A DNA stretch of 64,000 nt, from positions 1,241,876-1,305,875 of the forward strand of contig CAJINV010000006.1 in the NCBI GenBank assembly GCA_905178155.1. The letters run 5' to 3'. Every line of letters starts with the position of its first letter. The first letter of the stretch is position 1. Under the pieces are notes generated by a model. That model was not told the origin of the DNA. It did not search any database and saw only the letters and a program-made list of their open reading frames with translations. Shown here piece by piece: positions 15,769 through 63,778 of this stretch. Source of the stretch: Amoebophrya sp. A120. Lineage: Eukaryota; Protista; Dinoflagellata. Made by a program: the position numbers and the translations under genes.

Positions 15769-18700
15769 ATGGTAGAACTCTCTCCGTAGCTTTTTCACTC
15801 CTCAACTTACTACCAGGTGCTTGCCACGGCCCTGCTGCTCGGTTTTTTTTCGCAGCAAGCTGATTTTCCCTTTTGCGTACGAGCCACTTCTGGTTCTGGT
15901 GGCCCATCTTTGTTGGCCGAAGACGGAGCGGCAGGCGGACCAGCGCGCGCCGCTGGTGCACACCGCTCGATTGCCCCAGACGTCGAAGAAGGCCGCATAT
16001 GAGAGTGCACATCACCCCGGGCGAACCTGGCTCACCCCTGCTCGCTCATTCCTTTGTAATGCGAAATATCAACGTTCCCACATGTTGCGTTTCGAAAAAT
16101 GGTTGTGAATTCTCACGAGCGCAAACAGTACTAGATAGAAGCTAATACGTGCCACAGGTTTGTAAAGGTTCACAAGCTGCAGTACTGCATGGTTTTGTAG
16201 TGATGTTGCTGTAGTACTGGAACTAGGTATGCGTCAAGTTGTGAGGGGGAGTAAAGGGACTTATCGAAGCATCTGCACTTTCATACGCAGCCGCGGGGCC
16301 TCCATTGCACAGTTCGGGCCAGGACGACGAGGATGGTGACTTTTCGTCTGAAGATCATGACTCCGAGGTGGCCGCCTTCGTTGCTTGGCACTTCCGGAGC
16401 GTTTCCGGGATGTTAAAAAACGGAAATGCAGCCGCAGGGCGTCGGGGAAACAAGAAGAGGAAGAAGAGGTCCAAGCAGGAGGTACTCGCTGGGGAAGGAG
16501 CGCTTTCGGCAGAACAGAATAGCGGACGAAAAGTGGTGTCCACGAAAAACGACTGGGGAGCATTTTTGCAGGCTGCGGCCGTGTACCATGCGAGCAAACA
16601 GCCTGAATCTGCTAGCCAAGAAGACGGTAAACAACCTCAGCCTGCTAGTCAAGATGAAGCTGATGGAGGCAGCACCACCAGCCAGGACAACAACAGTGAC
16701 GCTCTGCTTGGCGGCTCCAAAAAGTACGAAGATGATGCAACCGCTCCTGCTGCGGCCGCCGCGCAACACGGTGGTGTAAGTGAAGGCGAAGAAGGTTCTG
16801 GACCCGTTCAGGACGAGATAGATTCCGGTTCATCTACTTCGGGGGAAGAACAATTTCTACAGCGCCAAGAGTTCCGGAGCCATCGGTTGGGGACCCCCGG
16901 CGGTTCTCCCGGACATCAGCATACAACCACACCGACCTTGGACCACACGAGGCCCAGCGGGGTCGCAACTACGCCCCATACTGCAACGAGTAAGGCGCCG
17001 CGGGTGCATCTTCATGGAGATATCTCTGGCAAAACTTCAACTGAAGAACCTTGGCGACGAGGCACGAATCAAGCAGATTTTCAACCGGTTCGAGGATCAT
17101 CAGATGGGCGGCCTTCTTACACTAACCGACCTCACCCGTATAACCCGCCGGATAGCCGGCTGAGAGGCCATGCTGCGACCAGCGCTGGTGCTGCGCAGGG
17201 GGCCGGTGTCCGACCGCACACGCAAATCGGGGGCCATGTTGATCAGCCGCACCGACCGGGTGGTGCTGGTGCTGTTCCTCCAGGAGCAAGGCCCCAAGCG
17301 GGACGGCCACTGGTCGGGCCGCAAGGCCAACATCAACACCTGCCGCCCACCTCGTTTCCGTCGCACACGACCTCACCGCCGCAAGGAGCGCATCTTCTAC
17401 CAGCCCCAACAGCAAGTTCCTCCACAGGCCCGGCTGGTGCCCCTGGAAGTCGCTCACCAGTTCAACAAAAACCCGCGGGTGCTGGTAGCAGCTCCGGACT
17501 ACTAGAACCCGCTGGTGGTAAACAGCTTCATCCTGCTCCTCCACCTCAGCAACAGCCTGCTGCTCCACCTCAGCCTCCTGCTCAACCTCGGCCGCCCGCG
17601 CAAATAAAACCTGCTCCGCCTCCTCCTGCCCAACATCTTCCGGGTGCAAATCCTGCTTCTGTTCCTTCTCCTCCGCCGACTTCTCCTCCGCCAGGTCCTC
17701 CTCGTCAGCACGGCCCCCCCTTCATACCACCGACGCCGCATTACGAGGTGATTGGTGTTGTGGAGTTGTCTTTCGTTTCTCGGGGAACTCCGACCGGGAC
17801 GTGGGAGGATGCTGCCATCTTCAGCGAGGAACAGCTGAAGAAGAATGGAGCTCATCTTCAGACTCGCAAAGCAATTGTGGCCCTGAAGCTACCAGGTATT
17901 TTCGACCCACCTATTCCGAGTGGCAAGGTGAAGGTATGGCGTTCTCAGCTGTTACACTCTCAACTGTTACATGATTGAGCTTGTCATGCAAAATTGGCAC
18001 CAAGACCAACATCTACATGATCGAGCTGCCTCGTGCGGCAAGTTGTTCTCAACGCGCTAGACAGCATGATAGAGAAGCTGCCCCAAACCTGCAATGCAAA
18101 AGGCTCAGTCTTCTATCTTTCACTTTTGCCGTTCTTGCATTACAAATCCATTTTAGTAATACAGCTCTGCAGCGAGTGTGACGCTTGAGAACTCCATAGC
18201 AGGGAATGGATTACGTGGTCCTGCAGAGCGACAACAGGGCTGTGTTTTTTCTGGACCAATCAGCTCCGGCGGTCGACTTGCAACAAGGATTGCAAAAGCA
18301 ACTGGGAGCGAAAGCTGATGGCCTTCACGTCGCCCATATGCATGTGAAGCAGGCGGCCTACACGTGGTTTTCCAGTCGCGACGCCAATAAATTTCAGGGA
18401 TTCCCTGTCCTGGATACGCAGAATACCAAAGATGAACTTCCTGCAGCTGCGCCCGAGAGTCAAGAAACCTGCATGCGGAAATGCACGCTGGACGTGCAAG
18501 AGGAGAAGCAAGGATGTGGTTTTCTCAAACGTTACATTCTCAACTGCTACATGATGAATTTGTGAAGCAAGAATGGCAAAAGTGAAAGGAAGAAGAAGAT
18601 TGCGCCTTTTGCATTACAGATTTGGGACGGACTCTAGTGCTATTTAGCGCGTCGAGAAGTTCTTGTCATGCGAAGAAGGCGCTATCGTGGGAAGAGTGAT

Positions 18701-21700
18701 AGTGTTTTTGCATGACAAAAAATCATGGAACTATATGAGAATGTAACGTTTGCGAGCCCCATAAAGGCGCTGGTGCTGGCCCGCCGACACACCACCACTG
18801 CATCGGCTGGGCTTGGTTCGAAGTAACAAGCGGGGGCGCACCTTCCCAGGGCAGATGCCTCATCGTGAGGGAGGGGGAGAACGCGCACGCAGCGCCGCCC
18901 TTCAAGACGTCTGTGGACAACGTTATCAAGGAAGAGATGGAAAAGAAGGGAGGCGACTTGAAAACCTACTGCAAACAGGACCAGGGGACGATGAAAGAGA
19001 CGGACGCCACAACCGATGCGAGCGCGAACGAGGACCACCCAGGCGCTGACCACCTGCAGAAGCAACATTCCACGTGCGGGCGCCATCACTTTGGGGGGAG
19101 CCACTGCTTCTGCGCTCCTGCGGTGGGAAGCCAGCACCAGCGCCCGCAAGAAAAAACAGGACACTACCTGATGAAAGTGTTTTTTGGTGCGCACGACAGC
19201 AAAATTTGCGGCTGGGACGCACAAATTGGCAGCCAGTGTCGGACGGAGGATAACGAACCTGGAACGTGCGTCTTCGATTGCCACAGCAGGACGGCGTTTC
19301 TTGGTCGTTTTTCTCATGATCTGTGCCAATGTGTCGCTCGCCCCCAGGACGCGCAGGCGGCGGGCACGGTGATCGATGAAGACCCGTACAACCAAAAATG
19401 TCACGGGGCAAACGACGGCACCGTTTTTCGTTCTACGCAGAGCGCTCCGAGGACTAGCGGCACACCTTGTGGGTTCGGAACTATGCCTTGCAATAGTACT
19501 ATGATCGCACTAACAAGCGCATGAGAATAGATATCCCACTCCTCAGCATCAGAAATGGAGTTTGTGATGCATGATTGTAATCCTAATTGGCTTCTAACGA
19601 GTGCGATGCTTTTGCAAGGCATAGGCGGTCACAAAGCAGGTCAGTGCGAGGTAAAACCGCCGAAAAACTTATGCCCAGAAAAAGCTGTCTCGGTCTCAAA
19701 TCTTTGCAGCAGTTGTGACTCGGCAATACAAATTTGCTCAGCCTGACTACGGGCAAAACCTGTGATGCGTCAGGCACAAGAGATAATTTTGATTCTTGCA
19801 TATCGAGCATGACAGAACAGAAAAATAATCTCAAGGAGTGTGCTCTGTGTTCCGCATTACAAGTTGAGACTGATTCGGTTTTTTCTCGCGATAAGACTGG
19901 CGCGACCAGTTGTGTGTGAACCTGGTGGACGCAGCGACCCTCGTTGTCAACCCGCTGGCTTATGGAGTTCTCAAACGAAGCACTGCTTGCTGTTACATGA
20001 AGATTTGTCATGCAAAATTACCAGCATCAGGATGTTGGGATCAGCATCGCTCCACACGATCAAGTAGCCAGTAAGCATGCCAAATTCATCTCGAAGGGCC
20101 ACCAAACATGATGGAAATCTGTGGCTGTGCCGAATTTGTAATGCGAGACCTGAGCAGAGAGAAAGCCGCCCTAGCCCCCTTTTCACTTTTGCTAATCTTG
20201 TTGCATCGCAAATTCGTGCTGCGGCAGCTGATAGTGTAACGCTTGAGAACTGCGTCATACGCGGATGACGAAAGGTATGCAATTGGTCTGGAATGCACTA
20301 TCGCAAAAACAGCCCGCTATCGACGAGATAAACAAGGAAACCGCCACGGAACTCATGGCCTTCATGCATGGCGACGGGTCACTGTTGCAGATCAACCCGT
20401 ATGCATTGCAAGAGTATCGTACTGCTCGTACCAATTGCAATTTGTGCATTACAAATCTAGGCGTTAGGTCTACTTTATGTAGTACTTTCACCATGCGCTT
20501 TTCCTTTTCCTTTTGCTTTTCATTGATATAGTACTTCACTGAATAAAGCAGAGCATAGTGATAATCTGTGGTTCAAATTGATGAAAATAAAAGTAGGCAT
20601 CGCGAGATGAACAAGAGGAAAACAAGGAATGACGGAAGACTTGCGGATAAACATGAGGAAAAATCGACATGTTCTTGCCCGTCGTGTGGACGACAGCGCC
20701 TACACGAAGATCATTTAATCATGTTGCACATGAGACTAGAAGATTTGCTACGGCCATATTCATATATCCAGTTTGAGAATTTGAAAATGAAAATTTTCGC
20801 TGCTGAATACTAGGTCCACGTGGAGCAGCAGAAGAAGGAGAAAGAAGGCTGCGACGGTGGACCCAATATTCCGAGAAAAAAACCTCCCTCCCCATATCAA
20901 ACACAGATTACATTAACTAGCAATATGACACATAATGCTCCAATATGACATTTGACGATGACGACATGAAAAAACTCCCAAAACACGAATTATCATATTG
21001 TAATATTGTCATATTGTCATATTGCATATTGCTCGCGACAGCCTGGCGGCTGAAAATTGGTCCTACCCGACACGATGTCGGCCGGGTGTTGTGATTCTAG
21101 GGCCTCTTAGGTGGGTGGCCATGCCTGTGTGGCAAATTTGGGCCGATGAGTTGTACGCACCTCCTCCGCCTCTCTTACCCTTGCCCAGTCTGCTGAACCT
21201 AGAGGGGGCGAGGCGCTCGTGCGCCGCGACTGGCAACACTCTAATCCTTTGGTTCTGTAGGCAGCGCCTGAGCTGTAGCGCCTCCTAGTGCGCTGTGGCT
21301 TTTAGCAGCATCGCCATGCCCGGGTTTCCTGACTGAGCGTCATAGCTTATTGTACTCCGAAACCGCAACGCGCCATGCTAATGACCACACGAAAACACTA
21401 TGACGCAATGACTGCTGAATTTTGAGCAAATGGGCTACCGTACGGAAAATTCGCATGAGAGCGGGCGGCCCGTGGCGAAGTCATTCGGGGCGCGCGTGCT
21501 GTTCGGGGTCGGACGATTGTGCTCGCCCATTGGAGAAGACGAGCGCATGTTGTATGACCACTCTCCTCTACCTGCCCAGCAATAACTCCAAAGCGCCCTG
21601 CTTATCTTTTCGCGATAGTTGCATGCTTTCTTCTGTGTGTATTAATTAATTTACTTTGCATGCGGATTGTAACGGAAAAAATACGCCTTGCGTGTCACTT

Positions 21701-24700
21701 GTTCTGGTCTAGCTCTAGCACTTCTAAGCCCCTAGCCCACGACCGCAGTACTTAGTTTGTTAGAATTTAGTGGCAGCCAGCAAGGCAGTTTTGTCATGGC
21801 TGATGTAAATGATTCTTGTCTCGCATGAAGATGAACCTGAGCGCGAATCCATATAGAATTTCAACGCGGGGCGTTTTGGTTGAATTTGCAGGGCCGGGGA
21901 GGTTTTCCCAAGATAACGCGACTCGTCGTCTCGCTGGCGACCGAACAAAATGGGACAGGAGCGGGCCTTGCAGCGCAAGTAGCGGCGGGCGCTGCCAGGT
22001 ACTTATTCAATTCAATGGCCATAGATATACTGAAGCTTCATTCCCATCGCCTTCGCCATAGCTCTTTCTGCAGATGAACTTGATGAAAATAGTTTTGCTT
22101 TTTTGGTGTAGAACGCTTATTGGGGAGGGGGCTGTGCTCTATGGACCTGCGGATTTTTCATATTCCCTCCACATTTCTCCATCTGGAATGTGCCGCCGTG
22201 CCAGTTGGTTTTTTTATACGGGGGAGCTGAGCACGTAGATGCTGATGTGCTACTTTGCGTCTTTTCATCGTCCGACCTGGAGTTGCAGCACAAAGTCAAC
22301 TATTAAATTAATTTGGCTTCATGAAGATGGCGCGTTTTTATGCAATATAAATAAGCTAAGTCACAGTGCCTATTTTCCAGCTTCCCTCTGGGATTTTAGT
22401 TTTCAGTGTATATTTATAAATAAGCGCGTCTTGTTTATTTCGGCCCGCCAGTACTAGCACTGCGCAAAAGTAGAGTACGTGGCGGAACCCTTCGCGGACG
22501 AACCTGGGTCGTCTTCGTCCCCTTTTGTTCGCTGTGTGTCGTTTTTCACATTTTCTTGCTTTTGGTGTTTGGATCAAACCCCGGCGGTTCTTGTTTAGCT
22601 TAGTGAACCCGAGATCTTTGTCGAAGATAAAAAGGGGCTTCTTCCTTACAACTGGGCTATTCGCACAGACGTGGCGTCTCTGTTCGTTCTGCTCTGCGCT
22701 GGCCACACGTGGCCAGCGCCACCGCCGGCTTCTCCCGGCCCACGTATCTGTGGCTGGTGTCCCCTTGCGGCGCCGCCTACCAATAAAGCCTGATGCAGTC
22801 ATCCAGCGCCGCACCCAAGAAGGATCACCGCCCTGCCGTTGCTTCTCGGGCCAGCAAGGCGGCCGCAGCCGCACAAGCAAATCCTCCACCACCTCTGCCA
22901 AAAAAGAAGCGGCAACCGCCGCGGAAGTTTGACGCGAGTCAAGATCTTGATCTTGGTCTTGGTCGCCAGGACGTCGACGTGGAGCCCTCCTCGGATGACG
23001 AATCCCTTATGGCTCCTGGTCCTGGGCACGGCAACGGCGGGCGCGAATCGGAATCCGTATCAACTGCAAAAATTGCCTGGGTCTGGAAAAGTGCAAAAAC
23101 ATCGTTTGTCATGCGCGTTTTGTATAAACGCATGTGGACTGTGATGGATGCCCTGGCATCACAGATTCCGTGAGATCTTTGCCATGCCTTTTCCGCATGA
23201 GAAACTGCCTCTTGGCTTGCTCAAATAAAGTGGACGGCTTTATTGATAATCATGCAACACTCACAGATCCTTGCATGATTCAGATTTAGCATGACAAGTT
23301 GCACCCTTCCAGACCCAGACACTTTTGTAATCCATAAGCCGACGAGATTGACAATGAGAACAAGGTGCGCATCAATTCACATGGGTCGATACGCGGACAC
23401 GCTGCGGCGAGGGACTCTCAAGAAGATGAGTCTGAGGAGCTGCAGCAGGAGGATGAAGAGATGCCGCAACAGCAGGACTCAGAGGAGGATCTGGGGCACG
23501 AAGAGGGCCTGCAGCAGGAGGGCGAAGACGAGCGGGAGAGCGAGGAGGAGCTGGAGGACGAAGAGGAGCTGGGACAGGTCGTATTTACGAAGGAGGAGGA
23601 CACGTTGCTTGCGAAGCGGTATGTGGAGACGAATCTGGGGTCCTATGAGGAGGCTGTGCGCGACGCAGACCATATGAACTGCAAAAGTATCGCACTCGTA
23701 TAAATGCATAGATATACAAATCTCCTCAGCATGAGAAAAAAAAATTGTAGTCCTAAAGAAAAAGATAAAGATTTGCAATGCATGCTTGCGATACGAGTGC
23801 GATACTTTTGCACAGCATAGGCCAGAGCGTCCTGCTATTTTTGAAAAACAAGCTGCTCAAGTCGTTGCTGAAGTGTCTCTGGCTGGAGTGGAGTATGACC
23901 GCCGCCCTGATTATCACCGTTGGCTGCAGCCTGTGCAGAAAGTGCAAGCAGCACCAGGCGCAACTCGAGCGGGCCGCCCGCCTCCGTATTGAAGACCAGT
24001 GCATCCCTGTTCCCCGCCCCAAAGCCAAGTCGGGGCCCGGAAAGTATCCTGTGCAAAAGTATCGAATTCGTATTGCAGACATGCATTACAAATCCAATCG
24101 TTTATGTAAATCCGCATTACATATTAATTGAGTTCTCATTCTCAATCTCATGCTGAAGAAATTTGTATTACGCATTTATACGAGTGCGATACTTTTGCAG
24201 TTCATAGACAGATGAAATCCGCAAAGGCAAAAGCGGCTCCAGCAACAGGGATTAGACAGCAGGGCAACGCGGGCGAAGGCGAGTGGGCGGATTGCACGAA
24301 GCCAGTTTTCAAAAACGGCGAGTCCGCGAGTATGAACCGGATTCACCAATCAGGTGGTCAGAAGCAGCACACCGGGGGCCAAGGTCATCGGATAGCCGCC
24401 GGGGAGGAAATTGACCAAGCTCCCGTGGTATCAAATGCAAAGATGGCCGGGTGTGGAAGCATGCAACTTGTGATGCTACATCTGGATTCCAAAAAAATCT
24501 GTATTGCATGAGCAGCAGAGGGAGTGTAATTTTTCCTACCCGGAGGGGCCATTTGTCATGCGTTATAGGCATTAAGAAGCCTACTGCCTACAAAAAATGA
24601 AAATCTGTGATGCTAGGGCATGCATCACAGACATCAGGGCTCATGCACGACGTGCGTGACAAATCTTAGAATCATCCAGACCCAGACACTTTTGCATTTG

Positions 24701-27700
24701 ATACTTGAACGGCGACGCAGACCTCGACGCCAACGCAATTCAGCCGTCGATGAAAGAGCTTTGCAAGGAGTACGCAAAGAACCGGGGCCATGGCGGGCGG
24801 GCACAGCTGCAGAACACTTTTACCAACTTGTTTTTCATCGTGCGATACCGGTTGCCAGAGAACATCTTTGCGGGCTTGCTGGAGCTATGCAAGACAACCG
24901 GCGGGTCTGTCTACGCCTCCGGCGGTTTCAACGACTACCTCTGGGTTGCGTTGAAGCAGGGGATTCTCGAGAAAAAGCAAAGGCTGGCGGGAAGAATTAT
25001 GGGGCTCTCAAGCGTTACGCCCCCAGCTGTTACATGATTTGCGATGCAAAATCAGCAGCAGCATCTTCAACGCGATCAAGTTAATTCGCATGACAAATTA
25101 TCGAAGGGCAAGGCATCGTCTAAATCTGTCCAAAATTTGCAATGCGAGAGCTTCAAGTGCGCGCCCCGCACCACTGCTGCTCTTGCATTGCAAATTTATG
25201 TAACAGCTGAGAACGTAACGTTTGAGAAGTCCATAAGAGTTGGCTACTGTTGTTTATCAGCAGACGAAAAAGACGGCTGCATCAGTGTGCGGGTGTCCTT
25301 CATAGCGTCAGGTGAGATGCCGAAGAAAGTGGATATGCATCTCGCCGCTTTGCCGGTCGCAAATAAGTCACCGCACACCGTTTACGGAGTTCTCCGGCAA
25401 ATTCTACAACTGGTGGGGCTGGACTACGGTGATAATTGTTGTCTTCAATTTGACGGCGCGAGGGAGCTTGGCGGCACGTGCGCCATGACGCTGGACTTCG
25501 CCAACGTGGGGAAGGAAACAGCAGCACTCGCACGGGATGCAGCGCTCCCAAAAAACCATCAGTACGCATTCGACGACGGAATTGATGCCTTGGTGGCAGG
25601 CAACGAAAGGGCGCAGCGGGAGGAGCTTGCGGCGGGGCTTCACGAGGAAAAACGCGGGGTCTCGGGCGGCAAGGTGCTAGATCTGCTGGACGCCTTGTGC
25701 TCTGAGAACGCAGAGTTGAAGCAGGAAGTATTGGCAGTTGCACCCCTTCCATCGGGTGCGAAAAAAACGAATCTCCTGAAGATGTTGCTGAAGGACTACG
25801 AGAATCAGATCTTCGTCCTCTTGTGTGGTGCGCACGACGCTAGTGCGTCGCTGAAAAAAGCCTGGGCATGAATTGCAAAAGAATCGCAGCAGCTGCAATT
25901 GCATTACAAATTTCCTCAGCATGATGAAACGCGGACTCTGTAATGCGGATTGACTTGAAGTTGAAGAGGAGGATCTCTGTGCAGCGCAAGCATGACTGCA
26001 ATTGATACGAGCTGTGCGATATTTTTGCACAGGATACGTGCTCGCTGCTGAAAATTTTACCCTCCCGGGCGCACGGGCCGGGGAATGCCCGTCCCTGGAC
26101 ACCATTTGCCGCGTAATGAACAGCTTCTACTACATATCCTATTTAAAAACGTCCCCGCCCTATAGTTGTCATGCAGATTTGCATCTACAGAAAAATCTGT
26201 GATACACATCCGCGAGAGAGGAATTTGTAGTCGTGTTCTGGGATTTGTAATGCTATGAATGAATAAATAAACAGGATGAGCAGACGCCTCTGTGATGCGG
26301 CTGTCCTTGCCAAACAGCACTACACTACAGATGATAACCTGGCACGCATACCTCCCAAAGCTGGGAGACTTGTATTGCAGATTTACCAACTTGACTACGG
26401 TGCGGGGACGTTTTTACTCAGGATACTACAGCCTGCAGTCGTCGCACAAGTTGAAGACGGAGCTGAGTGCCTTCGTTGCCACGACACAGGACGCAGCGGT
26501 GCGGTCGACGGGATCACTGCACGCGATTCACTCTCGATGGAATTTCCACCGGGTTGTGCTGACTTTCCTGGTGCAGCACCACGCAGCACTGACGGAGTTT
26601 GTCTTCCTTCAGATCAAGAAGCTCGGACATGCGTCTTATTTTGGCGAGGGACCGAATATCGCGATCATCCAGCGGGCGCTCGGGGTAGTGCCGCTGGAGC
26701 CTCCTCCCCCGAAAGCCAAGGCGGCCGGTGCACCTTCAAAAGCAAAAGCGGCGGCGGTGGGACCCAGCAAGGGCAAGGGGCAAGGGAAAGGCGCCGCTAC
26801 GAACGGCGGGCGGGTAGCACCGTCAAAGCAGGCTGCCGCGGAGACGTGGTGTGAGAGGGCAAGTTTGCTTATTTATGGGTTGCAAATATGTCTGGGTCTG
26901 GAAGAGCCAGACCTGTGATGCTGCATGTGGATGCTACAGAAGTCTATCTGTATTGCATGAACAGCAAGAAGAGTCAAATTTGGCTACGCGGAGAGCGGAT
27001 TTGTCATGAATGCAGGGTGCGCAACGGTAGGCGCTCAAAAAATGTGTGATGCTAGGGCATATGTCACAGACATCATGGAAAATGTGCATGACAAACTTCT
27101 CCTCTTCAAGACCCAGACATTTTTGCACTCGGTATTATTTATCCTGTGCAAAAGTGTCGCATTTGTATAATTAAATGCAAGCTCTGCATTACAAATATTT
27201 TTCCTAAGGTAAACGAGCATGACAAATTTCATTTTTCATGCTGAGAAAATTTGCAATGCATTTACTTATGCGAGTGCGATACTTTTGCAGTTCATATTAC
27301 TTCGTGGCCGACAATTTTGATGGCAGCTGCGACGGCGGATTTGTGTACCACAGTCGACGCTTCGATCTTCAAGCCGTTCCAGTGTTTGGGCCAGGAGCCG
27401 AAGTTCGGGGAGCTGGAAACAATCTGCTGCCAGGCACAGCTGAATCTCGTCGCAACCCTGGAGTCGATTGACGCCCAGCTTGATGCGCTTCGCCTGGACG
27501 AGGCCGAGCGGGAGGTCGCTGCAATTAAGAAAGCGAGGCAGGAGAACAGAGCGGAAATGGCGGAGAAGCTGAAGATATGGACTGCAAACAGGTCTGGGGC
27601 TGGAAGGTTGCAACCCGCAACCGCAGCAAGGCTGTCTTTGGATTCCAAAAAAAATTAACTATATTGCATGACCAGCAACTGCAACAGCAGTCCAGTTTAT

Positions 27701-30700
27701 GCTACGTACGCGGGCACGGCGTTTGTCATGCGGAGTAGGTATCTATCAGGAACCCTTCTAAAACTAAAATTGTCTGATGCTGGGCCATTCATTGCAGGGA
27801 ACATCGGTCATGAGAGATATGCATGACAGATCTTGCATTCTTCCAGACCCAGACATTTTTGCAGCTGATAGAAGAACTTGCGCAAAAGGCTTGGAGTAAA
27901 AATCGAAGCAGCAAAAGCGCAGAGCAGCGCCGTGCCGATGCTTCAGCGTGTCTTCCGGATGAACACGGAAACTGCAATGGGAGGCATCATCTTCCCCCAG
28001 GAGTCAAAGTTGCGGGACTTGGCCTGGCAGAACAAGTCTGCAGTGGCGATGAGCTGTGTAAGGGGCAAGCTCAACTGCTTCGTTGAAAACTTCTGCGACG
28101 GCATCGAGACGCTGATGGCGAAGCGAACAAACTGGGCCCAGGTCGGGAGAATGTTTTGCGCGAAACTCGGCACCGAGATCGATCCGAAGTACGAGGACTG
28201 GAAGGAGGACATCAGAGAGTGCCAGGTCCAGTGCAAAATCCGAGGGTCACCGATCGAGGCGCTGGTGTTTCTGCATAAAAAAGACACTAGGCAACTGGAC
28301 CTCGGGCGGCCGGCCTTTCGACTTCTCAACGCGTGCGCGCTGGCCGAGTTTAGTACGGCGCAGAACGATATGGACTGCAAATGTGTCTGGTTCTGGATGA
28401 AGATTCTAACTAAAGCTGTGATGCTGTCTCTTGATCCGAAAAAAAAAAACTGTGTTGCATGACCAGCCAGGGCGCTGCAGTTTGTGCTACGCGGAGAGGG
28501 CATGTCTCATGTGGTAGAGGCATCGCAAAGCCTTCTCAAAATCTGTGATGCCAGGTCATGCATCACAGAGAGACATCAGGGGTCATGCAAAATATGCTTG
28601 CATGTTGACAAACCTTCCATTCTTCCAGACCCAGACATATTTGCATGTGATAAACAAAAGGGACCTCAAGCAACTTTACGAACAGAAGCAAAAGAACGCG
28701 GGGACGGTGAAAATGGTCGGGCGGCACAGTTTAGACCAAATTCTGAAACACGAACAGGCGGGAACGGAGGCAGAGTTCGCAGCTGCTTGCGCGTCCCTGT
28801 ATCTTTCCAACAGGTGCCGGGCGCCCTTCCAGAGGGAGAAGAACGCACACGAGCGGTCCGACAAGGGCGCGAAGCGGGGGCCGCAGGATGGAGATGAGCG
28901 CTTTGCAACGAAGGTGGGACTGAATGCGGCGGACGTCCGTGCAGCGGCGCGCGCGGCAGCACCCGAGCCCGTGAAGAAGAAGGCTCACGCGGGAGGAGGA
29001 GTGGGCGCGGACGCCTCCAAGCTCGTCCTGAACGAGGCCAACGACGACCTGAAGAACTCGGTTTTTGAAGGGCGGGAGGAGGAGATTATGCCCGCCGAAT
29101 ATCTCAAACACGAGACACCCGCAGCGACTGCGACATTCTCAAAAAAGCAGGTGTCGCTGCTGGAGCATGTGACGGCGCAGGGGAAGAAGAAGAACGGAAC
29201 TGGGGCGGGTGGCAGTGTGCCCACAGCAAATATGTCTCTCTGGGTCGTCTGCAGAGTAAGTTCGAACAGTGGCGTAAGTCTGTGAGTGAAGGGTGGTCGC
29301 GCTGCAATATAGAGGCAGGCACGACTGCAGTTGTGATGTGCTAGAAGCGGTGGCAGTGCCCTGCGCCTCCATTCGCATGGTATATTGCGTCTGCCCGTCA
29401 CAGATTTAAGTGAGGGTCATGCCAAACAAGCATGGCGGGCAGACTTCAAATCTTTCCAAGGCCAGACATATTTGTAATGCATACAGGAGTAGCAGCTCGA
29501 GCGCCAGTAGCAGTCTTGCCGCGAGCAAGCAAGCGGGAGGACGGGGGGTGGGCAGCGCAGGGAGCAGTAGCAGAGTCGCCGCCGGGGCTGGCCACGCCAT
29601 GAAGGAGACCTTGCTTGGAGAGTCGTCCGCAGCTGGGCCGACTGGTAGTTTGAAGATGAGCCTCGACCACGGCTTCATGAGCTCGACCGTTAGTAGCCGC
29701 CTAAAGCAGGCCAACAGCAGCAAGCCCAGCAGCTCAGTGTCTTCCTTGGGGAAGGCGGGCAGCGCTGCCACCTCGTCGTCGAAAGTGCTGCAGCCTCCGG
29801 CGCCTTATCAAATGCAAATGTGTCTCAATGGGTCTGGAAGGGTGGAATTTGTAATGCTGTCTGCGGATGATAAAAGTATCTGTGTCGCATGAGTAGCAAG
29901 ACCAGTCAGCTCTTGGCACGCGGAGAGGGCATTTGTCATGCGTAATTTATTAGCATCAAGAAGCGAAAAATCTGTGATGCTAGCACCAGCATCACAGACC
30001 TCACGGGTCATGCAAAATCTGCATGACAAGCCCCGACTCCTCCAGACCCAGACATATTGATATTTGCAGTTCATACGCCTTCGAAAAAACCTGCGGAAAG
30101 TACACTGCAGCCCGCGGCCTCTCACGCAGGCCGCCCCGTCGCGGCAAAGGGCAAAACCTCGGGGGGGCCCAGCTCTAGCTCTACGGCGAGATCGTCGGCG
30201 AACGTGAAAGAGGACTTTTTATCAAATGCAAAGACTTATCTATGTCTGGGTCTGGAAGAGTGCAGGAGTTTGCCATGCAGTTTCTTTTTGCATGACCTTG
30301 ACCCATGAGGTCTGGAATGCGGCATCTAGCATGACAGATTCTGCAACGTCTCTGCCATGCCTATCTTGCATGAGAGGTTCCTTCTCAACGAACTTGGTAA
30401 TCATGCAGCACAGATTTTTTGCATGATTCGAATTTAGCATGACAAGTTGCCATCTTCCAGACCCAGACATCTTTAAAGTGCATTCTTTTTCAAGATGAGC
30501 AATACGCTGAGCGCTGGCGGTACAATTGGATTGATAATTACAATAATGATACAAAGGGTGTGTTTGGGTGTATGTCGGTTTCTCTTTTGTCTGCTGGTGC
30601 TGGTGCGAAGATGAAATCTATTTTACAGATAGCGCCTCTGCGGGTAGTGTTGCAGTCAGATACGTGCAGCAAGATATATAACCCTCTGAATCAGGTCGCG

Positions 30701-33188
30701 GCGCGGAGGTTGCAGCCGCCGGCCACGTGACCGGAGGACCCACTGGCGGCGCCACAGCTGGCGGCGGTTCAAAAAAAAGGGCTAGGGTCGTAAGGAACGT
30801 GCAGGTCGACGGGAATAAGATTCGGCGGGTCGAGGAGTCCGAATCCGAAGAGGGCGACCGGGATGCTGATGGGAAGAAGTTCGGCTGAAGGGTGAGTGGT
30901 TGTGAGAAGGTCGCTCCGCTTCGAGGGGATTTTATAAATATAAATAAACGTAGTTGGAAGCAAAACTAAATCTGGTCTGAATGCCGATCCTATAGTGAGT
31001 TTTTATTTTCTGGGCCTTTTCCTATCTTCGTCTTGTTGAGATTTATATAGGGCCCAAAGTCAACATGACTCCACGCACTATTTTTTCAAGGTTCTAGCAC
31101 AAGCATTTTTTGAAAATCAACAAACAATTTGTAGTCGAGGCGCTAGCTCTGAAAGTCTCAGTGTGCAAAACCAGGCAAAGCCCTTGGTTTGTAGGTCTCT
31201 ACGTTTCTAAACAACAAGCGAACCCACTTTGCTGAAAGAAGCAGAATTTTCTCGAGCGCATCGGATGCTTGGGCGCTTTCAGAATTCCAGGCCAAAAACG
31301 ATGAGAAGTCAAACTAACAATATGAATATGAGTGAAGATTTGCGCGATGAGAAAGCAACATGAAGATTTGCGCTGCGGTGTTGGATTGTGGTCTTCCTTT
31401 TATTTTGTTTGGAATGGGCGCGATATTTTTGCAACGGGTGGGAGGGAGGTATCAAGTGCAAACTAATATGTCTGGGTCTCCTGGAAGAGAGCAAACGTTC
31501 GCCATGTGATTTCTGATGCTGCACGTGCACACAGGTCCTCTTTCATGCATGAAAAGCATTTAAGAGACTCGGTTGGTGTTTCCTAGTGCCTAGCCTGGGC
31601 GGCAAATGACCTCTCCTGGAGACAAAGACAGCACATGCAGAGCTGACAACGCATCACAGATTTCAGTCATTCCAGAATCCGCACCAAGTGCACAAATACA
31701 CTCTTCCAGGCTCGGACATATTAACTTTCGACGCATAATGGCACCCGCTCGGCGTGATGCTTACCGGTCTGCAGGGGGGCGACACAAAAGTTCATAGAGC
31801 ACAGGAAACATGCATGAAGTGCGCTCGTATCGTGCGCCGTTTTGTAGGAACATTTTTTATATTCATTCCAAAAAACAACACAGGTCCGCTTCCGGGTTCC
31901 GACACTCGACACCTTCCGGTCATTTTGCTCAAAATCCAGCAGTCATAATGTCATATTGTCATATTGTCATAATGCATATTGCTCAACGTGTCGAAATTTT
32001 GCTAGTTAATGTAATGTGCAAACAAAAAAAGACTTCTGATGCGCGACTTGCGTACACAAAGCCACCTGTCATGCTGGTGGAGAAGCGCTACTAGGGCTTG
32101 CCCGTGCCAGACAGCACTTTCTTCTGCGGTCCGCATCCGTTCCCTACCAGCATGACAACTCACAAATCACGCCACACAAATTCCACTTTGAGCTATGGGG
32201 ACGAGGGGGGATTTTTCATTTTGATAGCCAAAGCCTCGTCCTCTCACACCGGCGTCACTGTGGGCACCGAGCACGCGACGCTTTCTGCCGAAAAATGCGA
32301 GGCGGGCGAGATTCTGGCCTGCTGCGACACGCTCTGCGACGCGGCGAACCCTGAGCTGTTTAAGTCCGAAAATTTTGAAGCCGTGTGCAACCGGGACTGC
32401 GCGTACTGCTACAAGAAAGACGAAGCCCATTGCCACAGCCTGTACCCGTGGGCGCCGAAGTCCGAAACCGCTGCCTCGGCGGCCGCTGCCTCTTCCTTTA
32501 CGGAGCAGAAAAAAATGCAGAAGGAAGGCGTATCCAGAAGAAAAATCACTGCCCCAAACACTTCCCAGAAAAGTTCTTGTCATGCAAATCTACGTGCCGA
32601 AAATTATGTTTCTCATGCGCAGCTGGAGCCCCAACATGAGAGGCGCTTTCTCTTCGTGTTTTGCAATTTGTCATGCTTGAGTCAAACGATAAGCAGCTCA
32701 ATCTGTGATGCTGCTGCACCAGCTAGACACAACTACAGTAGGATCCCAATAAACTTGTCATGCGCATCAAGAGGCAAAAGTTGCTGATTTATTGTCTACA
32801 AGATTTTTTATCTTGGCAACCCCGGGATTGTGTCGTGGGCCCCCGTTTTTTCTCAGGATGAGGTTGCAGCGGTGAAACCAAAGCCTCGTCCTCTCACACC
32901 GGCGTCACTGTGGGCACCGAGCACGCGACGCTTTCTGCCGAAAAATGCGAGGCGGGCGAGATTCTGGCCTGCTGCAACACGCTCTGCGACGCGGCGAACC
33001 CTGAGCTGTTTAAGTCCGAAAATTTTGAAGCCGTGTGCAACCGGGACTGCGCGTACTGCTACAAGAAAGACGAAGCCCATTGCCACAGCCTGTACCCGTG
33101 GGCGCCGAAGTCCGAAACCGCTGCCTCGGCGGCCGCTGCGGCCGCTTCGTCCTTTGCGGAACAAAAATCCAGCTCCGTCATTCTCTAA
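15769..33188 (+). CDS. Probable secreted Pro-rich protein with PAN/Apple-like motif and two C-terminal Cys-rich repeats; one intron carries the 11-kb hAT element
   Basis: caaaaaATG, 45-nt GT-AG intron 15772-15816, hydrophobic N-terminus MVLATALLLGFF. Frame restored across introners at 15998, 17935, 18515, 19482, 19670, 19961. Exon 20814-20866 joins 32232 to give EQQKKEKEGCDGGPKASSSHTG, matching repeat 2 EQKKMQKEGCSGETKASSSHTG. The link across 20400-20813 is not resolved. Confidence 0.55.
15998..16285. mobile_element. Introner family F
   Basis: TATGAGAGTGCAC...TGCACTTTCATA; removal with 5 nt joins the 15817 and 16305 ORFs. Confidence 0.7.
17935..18198. mobile_element. Introner family E
   Basis: TATGGCGTTCTCAGCTGTTACAC...GTGTGACGCTTGAGAACTCCATA; DR GAAGG/GCAGG. 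Confidence 0.85.
18515..18763. mobile_element. Introner family E
   Basis: E-type TIRs; DR AAGGA/AAGGC; frame restored. Confidence 0.8.
19482..19623. mobile_element. Introner family B
   Basis: TATGCCTTGCAA...TTTTGCAAGGCATA; DR decayed; frame kept. Confidence 0.75.
19670..19893. mobile_element. Introner, minor family H
   Basis: TATGCCCAGAAAAAGCTGTCTCGGTCTCAA / TTGAGACTGATTCGGTTTTTTCTCGCGATA; DR AAACT/AGACT. Confidence 0.7.
19961..20259. mobile_element. Introner family E
   Basis: TATGGAGTTCTCAAACG...GTAACGCTTGAGAACTGCGTCATA; frame restored. Confidence 0.75.
20400..20460. mobile_element. Introner family B, left half only
   Basis: TATGCATTGCAAGAGTATCGTAC; no matching right TIR found. Confidence 0.55.
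20921..21034. repeat. Left subterminal CAATATGA/TCATATTG array of the hAT element
   Basis: Multiple 8-mers in both orientations. Confidence 0.75.
22793..30614 (+). CDS. hAT-family transposase (TTF-type zinc finger, DDE RNase H-like core, hATC dimerization region), ~1460 aa, split by 14 introners at 13 sites
   Basis: Spliced exons total 4392 nt in one frame. Motifs: WLEWS..GCSLCRKC..QKQHTGGQGH (ZnF), CLSADEKD (D1, 25263), LQFDGA (D2, 25452), LLCGAH (CxxH), HSRWN, FSTAQNER (E). The C-terminal end is less certain. Confidence 0.85.
23058..23336. mobile_element. Introner family A
   Basis: A TIRs; DR ATCCG/AGCCG. Confidence 0.85.
23673..23819. mobile_element. Introner family B
   Basis: B TIRs; DR GACCA/GGCCA. 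Confidence 0.88.
24045..24206. mobile_element. Introner family B (reverse orientation)
   Basis: TATCCTGTGCAAAAGTATCG...CTTTTGCAGTTCATA; DR GAAAG/GACAG. Confidence 0.88.
24429..24703. mobile_element. Introner family A
   Basis: A TIRs; DR CGTGG/CTTGA; frame restored. Confidence 0.85.
24998..25235. mobile_element. Introner family E
   Basis: E TIRs; DR AGAAT/AGAGT. Confidence 0.85.
25867..26036. mobile_element. Introner family B (CAT start variant)
   Basis: CATGAATTGCAAAAG...TTTTGCACAGGATA; frame restored. Confidence 0.75.
26135..26425. mobile_element. Introner family C
   Basis: TATCCTATTTAAAAACGTCCCCGC...GCGGGGACGTTTTTACTCAGGATA; DR CTACA/CTACA. Confidence 0.9.
26874..27134. mobile_element. 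Introner family A (first of stacked pair)
   Basis: A TIRs; DR TTATT/TTATT. Confidence 0.85.
27140..27296. mobile_element. Introner family B (second of stacked pair)
   Basis: B TIRs; DR TTATT/TTACT. Confidence 0.85.
27576..27870. mobile_element. Introner family A
   Basis: A TIRs; DR GAAGA/GAAGA. Confidence 0.88.
28369..28652. mobile_element. Introner family A, inside the putative catalytic Glu codon
   Basis: A TIRs; DR AACGA/AACAA; join gives STAQNER. Confidence 0.88.
29218..29483. mobile_element. Introner family A, degenerate
   Basis: Right TIR intact, left decayed; DR CAGTG/CAGGA. Confidence 0.65.
29806..30075. mobile_element. Introner family A
   Basis: DR CGCCT/CGCCT. Confidence 0.88.
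30220..30484. mobile_element. Introner family A
   Basis: DR CTTTT/CTTTT. Confidence 0.8.
31450..31737. mobile_element. Introner family A, degenerate, in the non-coding part of the hAT element
   Basis: TATCAAGTGCAAACTAATATGTCTGGGTC...; DR not matching. Confidence 0.6.
31942..31984. repeat. Right subterminal TCATATTG array of the hAT element
   Basis: GTCATAATGTCATATTGTCATATTGTCATAATGCATATTGCTC, near-identical to 20993-21034. Confidence 0.75.
32228..33165 (+). repeat. Near-identical ~280-bp tandem coding repeat (32228-32510, 32878-33165), Cys-rich domain
   Basis: KASSSHTGVTVGTEHATLSAEKCEAGEILACC(D/N)TLCDAANPELFKSENFEAVCNRDCAYCYKKDEAHCHSLYPW present twice. Confidence 0.9.
32531..32860. mobile_element. 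Introner family C-like
   Basis: TATCCAGAAGAAAAATC...TTTTTTCTCAGGATG; DR AGGCG/AGGTT. Confidence 0.8.
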
Positions 33189-35566
33189 GTGGTCGAGAAA
33201 CAAAACGGTGTTCTATTGCAGCAAACCTGCAGACTAGAAACGCCAGTCATGTTCTTACTATGAATTTATTTCGAAATCACTATCACCGCAACAAAGTAGA
33301 AGTACTAAGTAGCTAACTGTTTCAGATTCAGAAAAAAACCAAAATTTTGTTCACAAAAATCAGTATCTTCGCGTACTAGCACGACTATTCGTATTTTTTT
33401 AGAAATAATGCATTCTCATCGCCCGTGGCCTTTTTTCATGTACATTAATACTAAATTTTTCTCGAAATGAATTTCAGCGAGGACGAGGCGGAGGTGGAGC
33501 CAGTGTCCTTTATTAGACCGAAAGAGAACTACATCAAAACCACACCGACCGACATCATCTTGTTAACGTAAACTAAAGTAAAAAGTATATATTTTTTATC
33601 AGACGTATCCCGCAATAAACGCAAACGCCAGCAAGTGAACTTTATTCAGTAGTAAGTGTCCTCGTATTAATATTAAGCGTAACTATAGACCCAAGAAACA
33701 AGCGTATTTTATCACTATGTAATCTAGAATTTTCTCGCACGACGAACAGCGTATCTATTCCGGAAGACTATAAGTATGCAACACCAACAAGACTTTTCCA
33801 GCAATTGCAACTGTACTACTAGCATTATGCGTATCCCGCAGCCGCAGCAGAAGTAAAAGTAGAAGTCAAAGTACTAGAAAGTATCATCCCGCCGAAAATT
33901 TTTGCTAGTTGTAGTTTCTCTCAGCCATCAGTCGACGTCCTATGCTGCGTACCCCGCAGCAGAACTGGACGTCGAGTGATGGTCCTCAAATCCTCACTGG
34001 AAGATTGTCAGAAAGAGCCCAACAAGCCGAAGCCTTTGCCAGAAAGAACCATCGCTGAATGAAGATCATGTCGTGAAGATGAAGCTACAACAAGGCACCA
34101 AACTCGCGCTACTAGTACCATTTGTGCGATGTAGTTGTAGGTCGTATTTCTAGTCGTGTCAACATCGAAGAAGATGACAACAACAACACGAGGGAAGTAG
34201 ATGATCGTGATGTTAATTGTTGCACAATGCGCCGCATCAGAAAGTACCTTAATAACCTTTGCAGCTACTACGAGGACCACGACATCACTTCATCGAAAAC
34301 AAAGCTGGTGCTCAAGAAGAACTTCTGACTCCGAAGATCCTTATCTTCATCTTCCAACCCTACTAGTTTCACCACCATTAAGTATGAAAAAAAATTTTAC
34401 TTGTTGTCGGGCGGCCCCCTAGTGTGCTGTGTTAAAGCACCATGCGGTCATCGTCGGACCTTTCATCGGCTTCATCGCCGTAGAAGTGCTGACGATGAAG
34501 GAATTCATCTTCGTGTTCACGACAAAGACATCTTGTCAATAACGAAGATCAACGACCTCCACATGATGTAGTAGATGCACTGCGCGGAGGAGGAGCAGCC
34601 CACTGTGCTGGCATGAGTTCACCAGCATGAAGATGATCCGCGGGAGCTCTGCGCACGAGGACCACGTCGGTTCTATTTCGTCTCGTGCCAAGAGATGTAG
34701 AGGTTGAAAAGTGTTGTCGTGCAAGACCTATAGTACCTACCTCCAGGACGACGACGATGATATTCTTTACAACCATCACTACTTTCACGGGACAGGATCT
34801 ACTTCTTCATCTCAACTACACAAAAAACGATCGGAGCAACCCAGTTTTGTGAGATGAGTGTGAAGACCACTCGGGATCTCTGACTGCTTGTCATGTTGTG
34901 CATGTGGAAAAGATCATACCTCCCGGGGAACCACGAAGAGACGGGAGAACAAAGGGTTGTCCTCGTGTAGTTGGGTCTAAGCGGCCACTAATACTAGAGC
35001 GATTGCATTCCTGTAGTTTTGCCCAAGTGTGTGTTGGTGGTCCAAATTCGAAAGCCATGTTGCCGTTTCTGACGCGAGGGCTTGCAACCGCGACCCTGCC
35101 CCTCTCCACCATCTCTCATTTACAACAGGAAGGTCGTAGTTCTTGGGAGGAGCAGCTTCAGATTGTTGGCGACAGCACTTCTTCTTTTGGACTGCACGAT
35201 AGCAGCTTACAGTTGACAACACAGCAGCCATTGCTTGCACGCGGAGGAGGTCGAGGAGAAGCAGAAGGAACAATACTAAAACCAACCGCTTCCCCCTCAT
35301 CATCCTTTCTCTCCGACTACACTAGCGGCAGCCATGATCCTCGTGAAGGCCCCTTCCTTCGCCCCTAAGGCCCCTGGTGTCATGCCGATGCCCGAGATCA
35401 TGATCATGGAAATAAAATTCTCTCCGAACAAGCACGGCAAACCACTTTCTGCTCGCTGCAGGGCCAGTTTCCCTGCAAGCCGGAGGGAAACTACTGCAAC
35501 ATCTCGTGTGAAACGTACGAGGCCTCCTTCGCTCCCAACACTACGCATACCTGCGCGTGCCAGGAT

Positions 35567-63453: not shown

Positions 63454-63778
63454 TATCAAAACGAAAAATCCCCCTTCCCCATATCAAAACGAAGTTTCTG
63501 ATGCCGGATTTGCGTACACAAATCTGATTTGTCTTGCAGTAAGGCAGCGCAGCCAGATCCTCGGCCTAGGTAGGGGCGTTTGGGTCTAGTTGCTTAGCAT
63601 TACAAACGGCTGCCCCCTAGGCGCAACAGCATGCCTAATCGCTTCCATAATGGAGCGGAAGCTTCTGCACTTGTCTTCTTGCAAGACAGACGTGATTTGT
63701 GGTCTCAAATCAGCAACGCAAATTTTCGGAGTCATACTTTTTCGATATGTTGGGGAGGGGGGATTTTTCCTTACAATA
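63454..63778. mobile_element. Introner family G, intact, outside any CDS
   Basis: TATCAAAACGAAAAATCCCCC...GGGGGATTTTTCCTTACAATA; DR TGTGA/TGTGA; absent from paralogous flanks near 59680 and 61610. Confidence 0.88.

Follow-up and report, generated by a model that had tools for sequence, protein, structure and literature searches.

Non-canonical introns that derive from repeated, so-called introner elements, which carry inverted and direct repeats, have already been described in the dinoflagellate Amoebophrya sp. A120 (Farhat et al. 2021, PMC7789003; Gozashti et al. 2025, PMC12130899). The present analysis concerns a window of 64,000 nucleotides (nt) of its 115.5-Mb assembly (G000:C6:1241876-1305875; contig CAJINV010000006.1), in which an introner of a family designated G interrupts a coding exon and is itself split by an 11,115-bp transposon with terminal inverted repeats (TIRs), the gene of which contains further introners. 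All positions given below are those of the window. This order of nesting (exon, G introner, 11-kb transposon with TIRs and a target site duplication (TSD), introners within the transposon gene) is real and confirmed, since sequence, other genomic copies and RNA agree. An earlier examination of the letters alone, hereafter the sequence-only reading, had already placed an 11,115-bp element with 19/20 TIRs and the 6-bp TSD CAAACA within a G introner, which was borne out by the element borders, by other copies of the element and by intact G copies.

The transposon and the introner that it splits

Of the 20 positions of the left TIR of the element (20904-20923, CAGATTACATTAACTAGCAA), 19 agree with the reverse complement of the right TIR (31999-32018, CACATTACATTAACTAGCAA), and the two copies of the TSD are identical at all six positions and lie exactly at the element borders. 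By an arithmetic estimate, the chance expectation for such a TIR and TSD pair in the window is about 1e-5. Subterminal 8-nt arrays are present at 20989-21031 and 31942-31978. A DNA search of the whole genome found three short derivatives (L004, L005 and L006; 839-893 bp, 78-84% identity) that have kept both ends, and the family is small: besides the full copy and a 3' fragment, it has at least three deletion derivatives. The terminal bases are identical in the four other genomic copies (the three derivatives and the 3' fragment), and RNA contigs of other element copies depart from the reference precisely after 32018. L004 and L006 carry the 6-bp TSDs CACATA and TGTAGT, and the TSD is 6 bp long in all three complete copies. 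Inverted repeats at both ends and a fixed-length TSD on independent copies, by which a Class II TIR transposon is recognized, are thus both present. The Rfam search of 20000-33500 returned no match. The element is a previously undescribed TIR/TSD family with an orphan, expressed and introner-rich gene.

The introner around it shows the features by which introners are recognized, as do the elements inside the transposon gene: inverted repeats at the ends, direct repeats across the borders and membership of multi-copy families. The 5-nt direct repeats of the split G copy (CCCAA and GCCAA) are identical at four of five positions, and its left arm pairs with the right arm (~32196-32226) at -30.8 kcal/mol, compared with -38.9 kcal/mol in an intact copy. 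The genome contains at least 40 right arms of this family. Four intact G copies (L018, L014, L019 and L020; about 305-325 nt), each with a perfect 5-nt repeat of its own, are collinear with the split copy across the breakpoint save for a 4-nt difference in an A-run; the split copy is shorter than usual, about 70-100 nt of its interior being missing. The sequence-only reading had rejoined the two halves and matched them to the G copy at 63454; the match holds for the arms (63 nt at 79% and 64 nt at 75%) but not for the interior, which differs, and it is the other intact copies that align through the breakpoint. The same reading had the G introner run from 20867 to 32226 between the repeats CCCAA and GCCAA. 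Its family, repeats and arm ends stand, but what ends at 32226 is the right arm, and the sequence that would be removed as an intron extends to 32231 (20867-32231, 11,365 nt). In the assembly, the host flanks are unique, and the host site has neither a paralogue nor an empty allele. The features of the locus are collected in Table 1.

Table 1. Coordinates of the host gene, the split introner, the transposon and the transposon gene in the window
Feature	Position	Strand	Basis or remark
Possible upstream host exons	16305-17934, 18204-18514, 18769-19481, 19629-19669, 19899-19960, 20265-20399	+	Predicted from a stop-free chain
Host exon, 5' half of interrupted exon	20814-20866	+	Ends ...VHVEQQKKEKEGCDGGPK, with CCCAA at 20862-20866; in frame with 32232 onward; nucleotide homology to second repeat
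G introner, left part	20867-20903	+	Left arm TATTCCGAGAAAAAAACCTCCCTCCCCATAT (20867-20897), then left TSD copy CAAACA (20898-20903); sequence, G copies, arm pairing
TIR DNA transposon, 11,115 bp	20904-32018	+	TIRs, TSD, other genomic copies, RNA contigs
Right TSD copy CAAACA	32019-32024	+	Sequence
G introner, right part	32025-32231	+	Right arm ends at 32226 (...GGGGGGATTTTTCATTTTGATA); AG at 32226-27; repeat GCCAA at 32227-32231
Element gene, 15 exons, 1,496 codons and stop	22793-30888	+	Gene model, public model, RNA joints from 27570 on
Element gene, exons 1-5	22793-23057, 23342-23672, 23825-24044, 24212-24428, 24709-24997	+	
Element gene, exons 6-10	25241-25866, 26042-26134, 26431-26873, 27302-27570, 27871-28367	+	
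Element gene, exons 11-15	28657-29216, 29488-29800, 30076-30214, 30485-30518, 30694-30885	+	
Inner introners, arm to arm	23058-23336, 23673-23819, 24045-24206, 24429-24703, 24998-25235, 25867-26036, 26135-26425	+	
Inner introners, arm to arm	26874-27134 and 27140-27296, 27576-27870, 28369-28652	+	First two stacked at one site
Inner introners, arm to arm	~29217-29483, 29806-30075, ~30220-30484	+	
Canonical GT..AG intron of element gene	30519-30693	+	RNA joint 30518/30694, cut +1
Downstream host exons and stop	32232-33190	+	Exons 32232-32529 and 32865-33187; introner intron 32530-32864
Intact G-family copy	63454-63778	+	TGTGA repeat on both sides; only the arms resemble the split copy

The gene inside the transposon

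Once the introns are removed, the element gene forms an uninterrupted open reading frame (ORF) of 1,496 codons (22793-30885). The model corresponds to the public protein CAD7953438.1 (GSA120T00013579001, 'unnamed protein product'; 1,421 amino acids (aa)), which starts at M73 of the model, and the two differ only in this start and in three junction details. The junction differences lie at 24424-24708, 23825-23850 and 25862-26044 (VNG vs VDG, AWL vs AWV; one residue), and CAD7953438.1 is without 9 nt that are present in the hand-curated model (FLKN to Y). The borders were curated by hand on the basis of a grammar of TAT, two arms and ATA with a 5-nt repeat, together with the RNA joints; automatic border finding from repeats alone was too loose and gave 1,900 solutions. 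The position of the cut within the imperfect 5-nt repeats is not fixed by the sequence, and a rule of keeping the left repeat disagrees with the public model.

The sequence-only reading had recognized a same-strand gene with non-canonical introns of its own, and the 1,496-codon model, the public protein and the RNA joints all bear this out. The number of introners that it gave, 15, has to be revised: the gene contains 14 introners in 13 non-canonical introns, plus one GT..AG intron. The inner introners have TAT...ATA termini and a repeat of ~5 nt, and many family copies exist at 83-89% identity. The site 26874-27301 has a stack of two introners from different families, in the order repeat, first introner, repeat, second introner, repeat (TTATT / TTATT / TTACT), and the model treats them as a single intron of 428 nt. 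RNA contigs of runs X3 and X6 contain the joints 27570/27871, 28367/28657, 29216/29488, 29800/30076, 30214/30485 and 30518/30694, by which the last six introns, five non-canonical introners and the one with GT..AG ends, are confirmed.

Moreover, the depth of RNA contigs is 12 for the inner gene and 8 for the host exon in run X6, and about 10 and 854, respectively, in run X3. These contrasting ratios indicate that the inner gene is expressed independently of the host gene. The CAG/CAC ends and 6-bp TSD of the element differ from the TAT...ATA ends and ~5-nt repeats of the inner introners, and the element is therefore not their mobilizing partner.

The interrupted host gene

The host exons in 32232-33190 encode two Cys-rich units of about 105 aa each, which are 96% identical. 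When 20866 is joined to 32232, leading into AGCCTCGTCC..., the reading frame continues as ...EGCDGGPK/ASSSHTG, and the join is collinear with the second repeat unit at the nucleotide level, with no insertion or deletion. The second unit's own junction (32529/32865) is present in RNA at a depth of 621. The proposal that the flanking exon halves join to match the second repeat of the gene holds at the level of the sequence. Codon usage picks the Cys-rich frame (+72 bits, vs -49 and -107 for the other frames). Two frames are open through both units (32232-33237): the Cys-rich one and the +1 frame, which is rich in Arg, Pro and Thr. The intron between the units (32530-32864) has GT..GT ends and shows a depth of 621 spliced vs 3.5 retained in run X3.

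On the upstream side lies a Pro-rich chain of exons (16305-20399) with 964 codons and no stop once five introners are taken out; judging from its reading frame, it may represent the 5' portion of the host gene. It is in frame with 20814 only if 20400-20813 (414 nt) is an intron. Two results count against the overall explanation favored below. The presumed intron shows no clear grammar of repeats and arms, and for the intron ending at 20813 no partner arm could be located. In addition, no annotated host protein with the exon was found in the ranges of 55-177 and 126-400 aa, nor one with the 44-aa ORF of the left exon; this search is silent on proteins longer than 400 aa. If the upstream chain is correct, the host protein would have about 1,200 aa, which would explain the failure of the length-limited searches.

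Processing of the 11,365-nt interval

In run X3, the depth is 854 over the exon from 32228, 12 over the adjacent half of the G introner (32000-32199) and 5-23 over the 3' end of the element, and at least 98% of the RNAs that contain the exon from 32228 are without the upstream genomic sequence. The edge at 32228 is therefore a processing site rather than the result of read-through or of a start farther upstream. The old introner acceptor is in use.

With regard to the 5' partner of this acceptor, there is an even chance, or slightly better, that it is the exon 20814-20866 and that the whole of 20867-32231 is removed in cis, a possibility that the sequence-only reading had put forward as a question. 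Set against this is that no contig crossing 20866/32232 was seen in the RNA, which was read over the right side of the element only, and that the DinoSL leader, which has been found on 37.8% of A120 transcripts (PMC7789003), could use the same AG. X9 and X10, two raw RNA runs, gave almost no reads of the locus. The contigs end at 32228 because CCAAAGCC... from that point on is common to the repeat units and to any spliced form, which makes the assembly graph branch; a contig that takes the junction into this stretch could not arise.

The other candidate for the 5' partner is the DinoSL leader itself. Here, the nesting holds and the insertion would have uncoupled the exon halves: the downstream Cys-rich exons would be matured by trans-splicing at AG 32226-27 of a long or polycistronic precursor, and 20814-20866 would lie outside that mRNA. 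We consider this plausible, although the less probable of the two routes, both of which would use AG 32226-27 and fit the sharp exon edge equally well. A T-rich tract and then AG directly precede 32228, the RNA contig stops exactly there with no extra letters, as a shared leader would give, and the frequency of DinoSL is accompanied by co-oriented gene clusters in A120 (PMC7789003); furthermore, the donor for splicing in cis is non-canonical and lies at a distance that has become 11.4 kb. On the other hand, the end of the contig at 32228 is already accounted for by the branch between the repeat units, and the first in-frame ATG lies near the end of unit 1, so that ~290 nt of an intact, codon-biased ORF would serve as leader. 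A Cys-rich and probably secreted repeat would also be left without an N-terminal signal, and the arms of the G introner are intact and have retained their pairing.

Origin of the nested structure

Serial insertion of transposons is, on balance, favored as the overall explanation. At the first step, a G introner (239 nt and a 5-nt repeat, that is, 244 nt removed) would have entered a coding exon of a gene ending in two Cys-rich repeats and served there as a non-canonical intron. The 11,115-bp cut-and-paste transposon would then have landed 31 nt into this introner, just beyond its left arm, with formation of the 6-bp target duplication and with both G arms left intact. Transcription of the transposon gene is independent of that of the host, with precise removal of the 14 introners and the single GT..AG intron, and the gene product would most likely be the transposase of the element, a very divergent RNase-H-like DDE enzyme that is possibly distantly hAT-like. 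Downstream, the host gene is strongly expressed through the old introner acceptor, and 20867-32231 could leave as one non-canonical intron with the G arms defining its ends, for which the balance is roughly even. In this scheme we infer the 20866/32232 junction, as well as the connection with the upstream exons.

It is very improbable that 20867-32226 is instead a single autonomous giant G introner with its own transposase. The gene does lie on the strand of the host, but the inner element has TIRs and a 6-bp TSD of its own and occurs elsewhere without G flanks, its CAG/CAC termini and TSD length are unlike the introner grammar (TAT...ATA, 5 nt), and the short intact G copies align collinearly across the breakpoint; this explanation was rejected on these grounds. 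A misplaced 11-kb block between two G-like repeats was likewise rejected as even less credible: some redundancy of the assembly is seen in a 1,852-bp contig (C265) that duplicates part of the element at 100% identity, but a misjoin would not make a perfect 6-bp TSD beside 19/20 TIRs within the complementary halves of one introner, RNA contigs cover 31418-31883, low-level depth continues past the element's right end and through the right half of the G introner, and the flanks are unique in the genome.

The idea that introners act as a 'safe harbour' for large transposons comes from a single case, and the sequences flanking two further element copies speak neither for nor against it.

Identity of the encoded protein

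For CAD7953438.1 we infer a transposase function, which is probable, and kinship with the hAT superfamily, which is possible, with the chances about evenly split. The likenesses to hAT elements (Ac, hobo, Hermes) include short TIRs of 20 bp, subterminal repeat arrays, one long gene and short deletion derivatives. Moreover, the protein shows, by eye, the motif order LSADE ... QFDGA ... CGAH ... SRWN, which follows the order D ... D ... CxxH ... RW of hAT proteins, and all 10 named language-model (ESM-feature) neighbours are hAT-derived families, with low scores of 0.80-0.86. AlphaFold modelling of exon 6 alone, at low confidence (pLDDT 39), gave the order strand, strand, strand, helix, strand, with an Asp on strand 1 and another right after strand 4.

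Several results weigh against these assignments. No Pfam family was matched by 10 ORF pieces or by the full public protein, PDB sequence searches with exons 6, 8 and 10 gave matches at chance level only, and in a HMMER search of exon 6 against 1.84 billion representatives the protein matched only itself. The Foldseek search with the pLDDT-39 model yielded a best E of 0.058 and no match at E<=0.001, although the weak matches are all folds of RNase-H/ASKHA type, which speaks for a transposase, and the protein-atlas scores (0.80-0.89) are taken as leads only. Within the genome, the other matches of the element protein are limited to C265 (aa 15-127) and to the 3' fragment on C5/C102 (aa 1340-1421).

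Two defining features of hAT elements were tested specifically, and neither was found: the TSD is 6 bp rather than 8 bp in three of three copies, and the hAT dimerization domain (PF05699) has no match at E<=10 on the full protein and none at the locus in a six-frame scan of the genome. A whole-genome scan with PF14291 found nothing at the element locus. No other hAT match came from the Pfam, PDB or HMMER searches, and the protein further differs from hAT transposases in the spacing of about 115 aa between the second Asp and CxxH and in its long low-complexity tail. Repbase hAT subgroups with TSDs of 5-6 bp exist. The hAT label given by the sequence-only reading is thus not established, with a 6-bp TSD throughout and no relative in PF05699, Pfam, PDB or HMMER searches.

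Relation to known intervening sequences

The G introner and the 14 inner introners resemble the introner elements reported for Amoebophrya in their terminal inverted repeats (8-20+ nt), direct repeats (3-5 nt), multi-copy families and non-canonical splice sites (PMC7789003). Precise removal from RNA, which is typical of introner elements, is seen here in five of the inner introners and in the host intron 32530-32864; for the enlarged G introner it is the acceptor-side edge that is seen. The differences from the published introners are that one introner has been swollen to 11,365 nt by another transposon and that the inner gene is itself full of introners. In the survey of Farhat et al., introns of 40-1000 bp were validated and the aligner was capped at 10,000 bp (PMC7789003), and an intron of 11,365 nt was therefore invisible to it.

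A second relation is to the introners of A120 that derive from TIR transposons and in part bear ORFs (Gozashti et al. 2025, PMC12130899), with which the locus shares the organism, the presence of TIR elements in genes and the many introners per gene. In contrast to those introners, the 11-kb element has CAG/CAC termini and a 6-bp TSD, and it sits within an introner and does not form intron ends; its protein shows no homology to integrases or to Copia/Gypsy-like proteins. Twintrons and stwintrons (fungal stwintrons, PMC8469720) are also comparable, as intervening sequences are nested in them and ordered or recursive removal is needed, but in the present case the inner introns are those of a separate, expressed transposon gene and the outer splice signals are uninterrupted.

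For the removal of the thousands of Amoebophrya introns without GT..AG ends, a published model proposes that the intron ends are brought together by a hairpin of the inverted repeats (PMC7789003), and the locus offers a natural test of it: one and the same pair of arms has come to be separated by 11.3 kb in a highly expressed gene, and arm pairing at a distance may be tested against arm-independent recognition. If the 11,365 nt are excised, end recognition would need neither a local hairpin nor a short distance. With regard to transposons, the genome paper reported no transposase in A120 (PMC7789003), and the element in the window belongs to a TIR/TSD family that has non-autonomous derivatives, its own ORF being intact, expressed and invisible to profiles. 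The combined proposition, that a non-canonical intron is still precisely excised after growth from 244 to 11,365 nt, past an expressed gene and 28 introner ends, and that the element holds the first candidate autonomous DNA-transposon enzyme of A120, from a lineage beyond profile detection, is tentative and falls somewhat short of an even chance.

Other copies and remnants

The 3' fragment of the element (1.4 kb, 97% identity) is present on two contigs with the same flanks (L002, C102:4747-6134; L003, C5:7834953-7836340), and the flank ttttcgtcgaaaatcgtgaccta is found on both sides of it. In run X6, this copy is transcribed above the copy in the window, at a depth of 56. The contig C265 (L001, G000:C265:1-1852), which is identical to window positions 21913-23764 over its entire length, one introner included, is probably an assembly leftover or a duplicate. 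Finally, a degenerate introner-like stretch (ATATGTCTGGGTC ... CCAGGCTCGGACATAT) lies at 31450-31730, within the element's 3' region; an RNA contig (31418-31883) crosses it unspliced.

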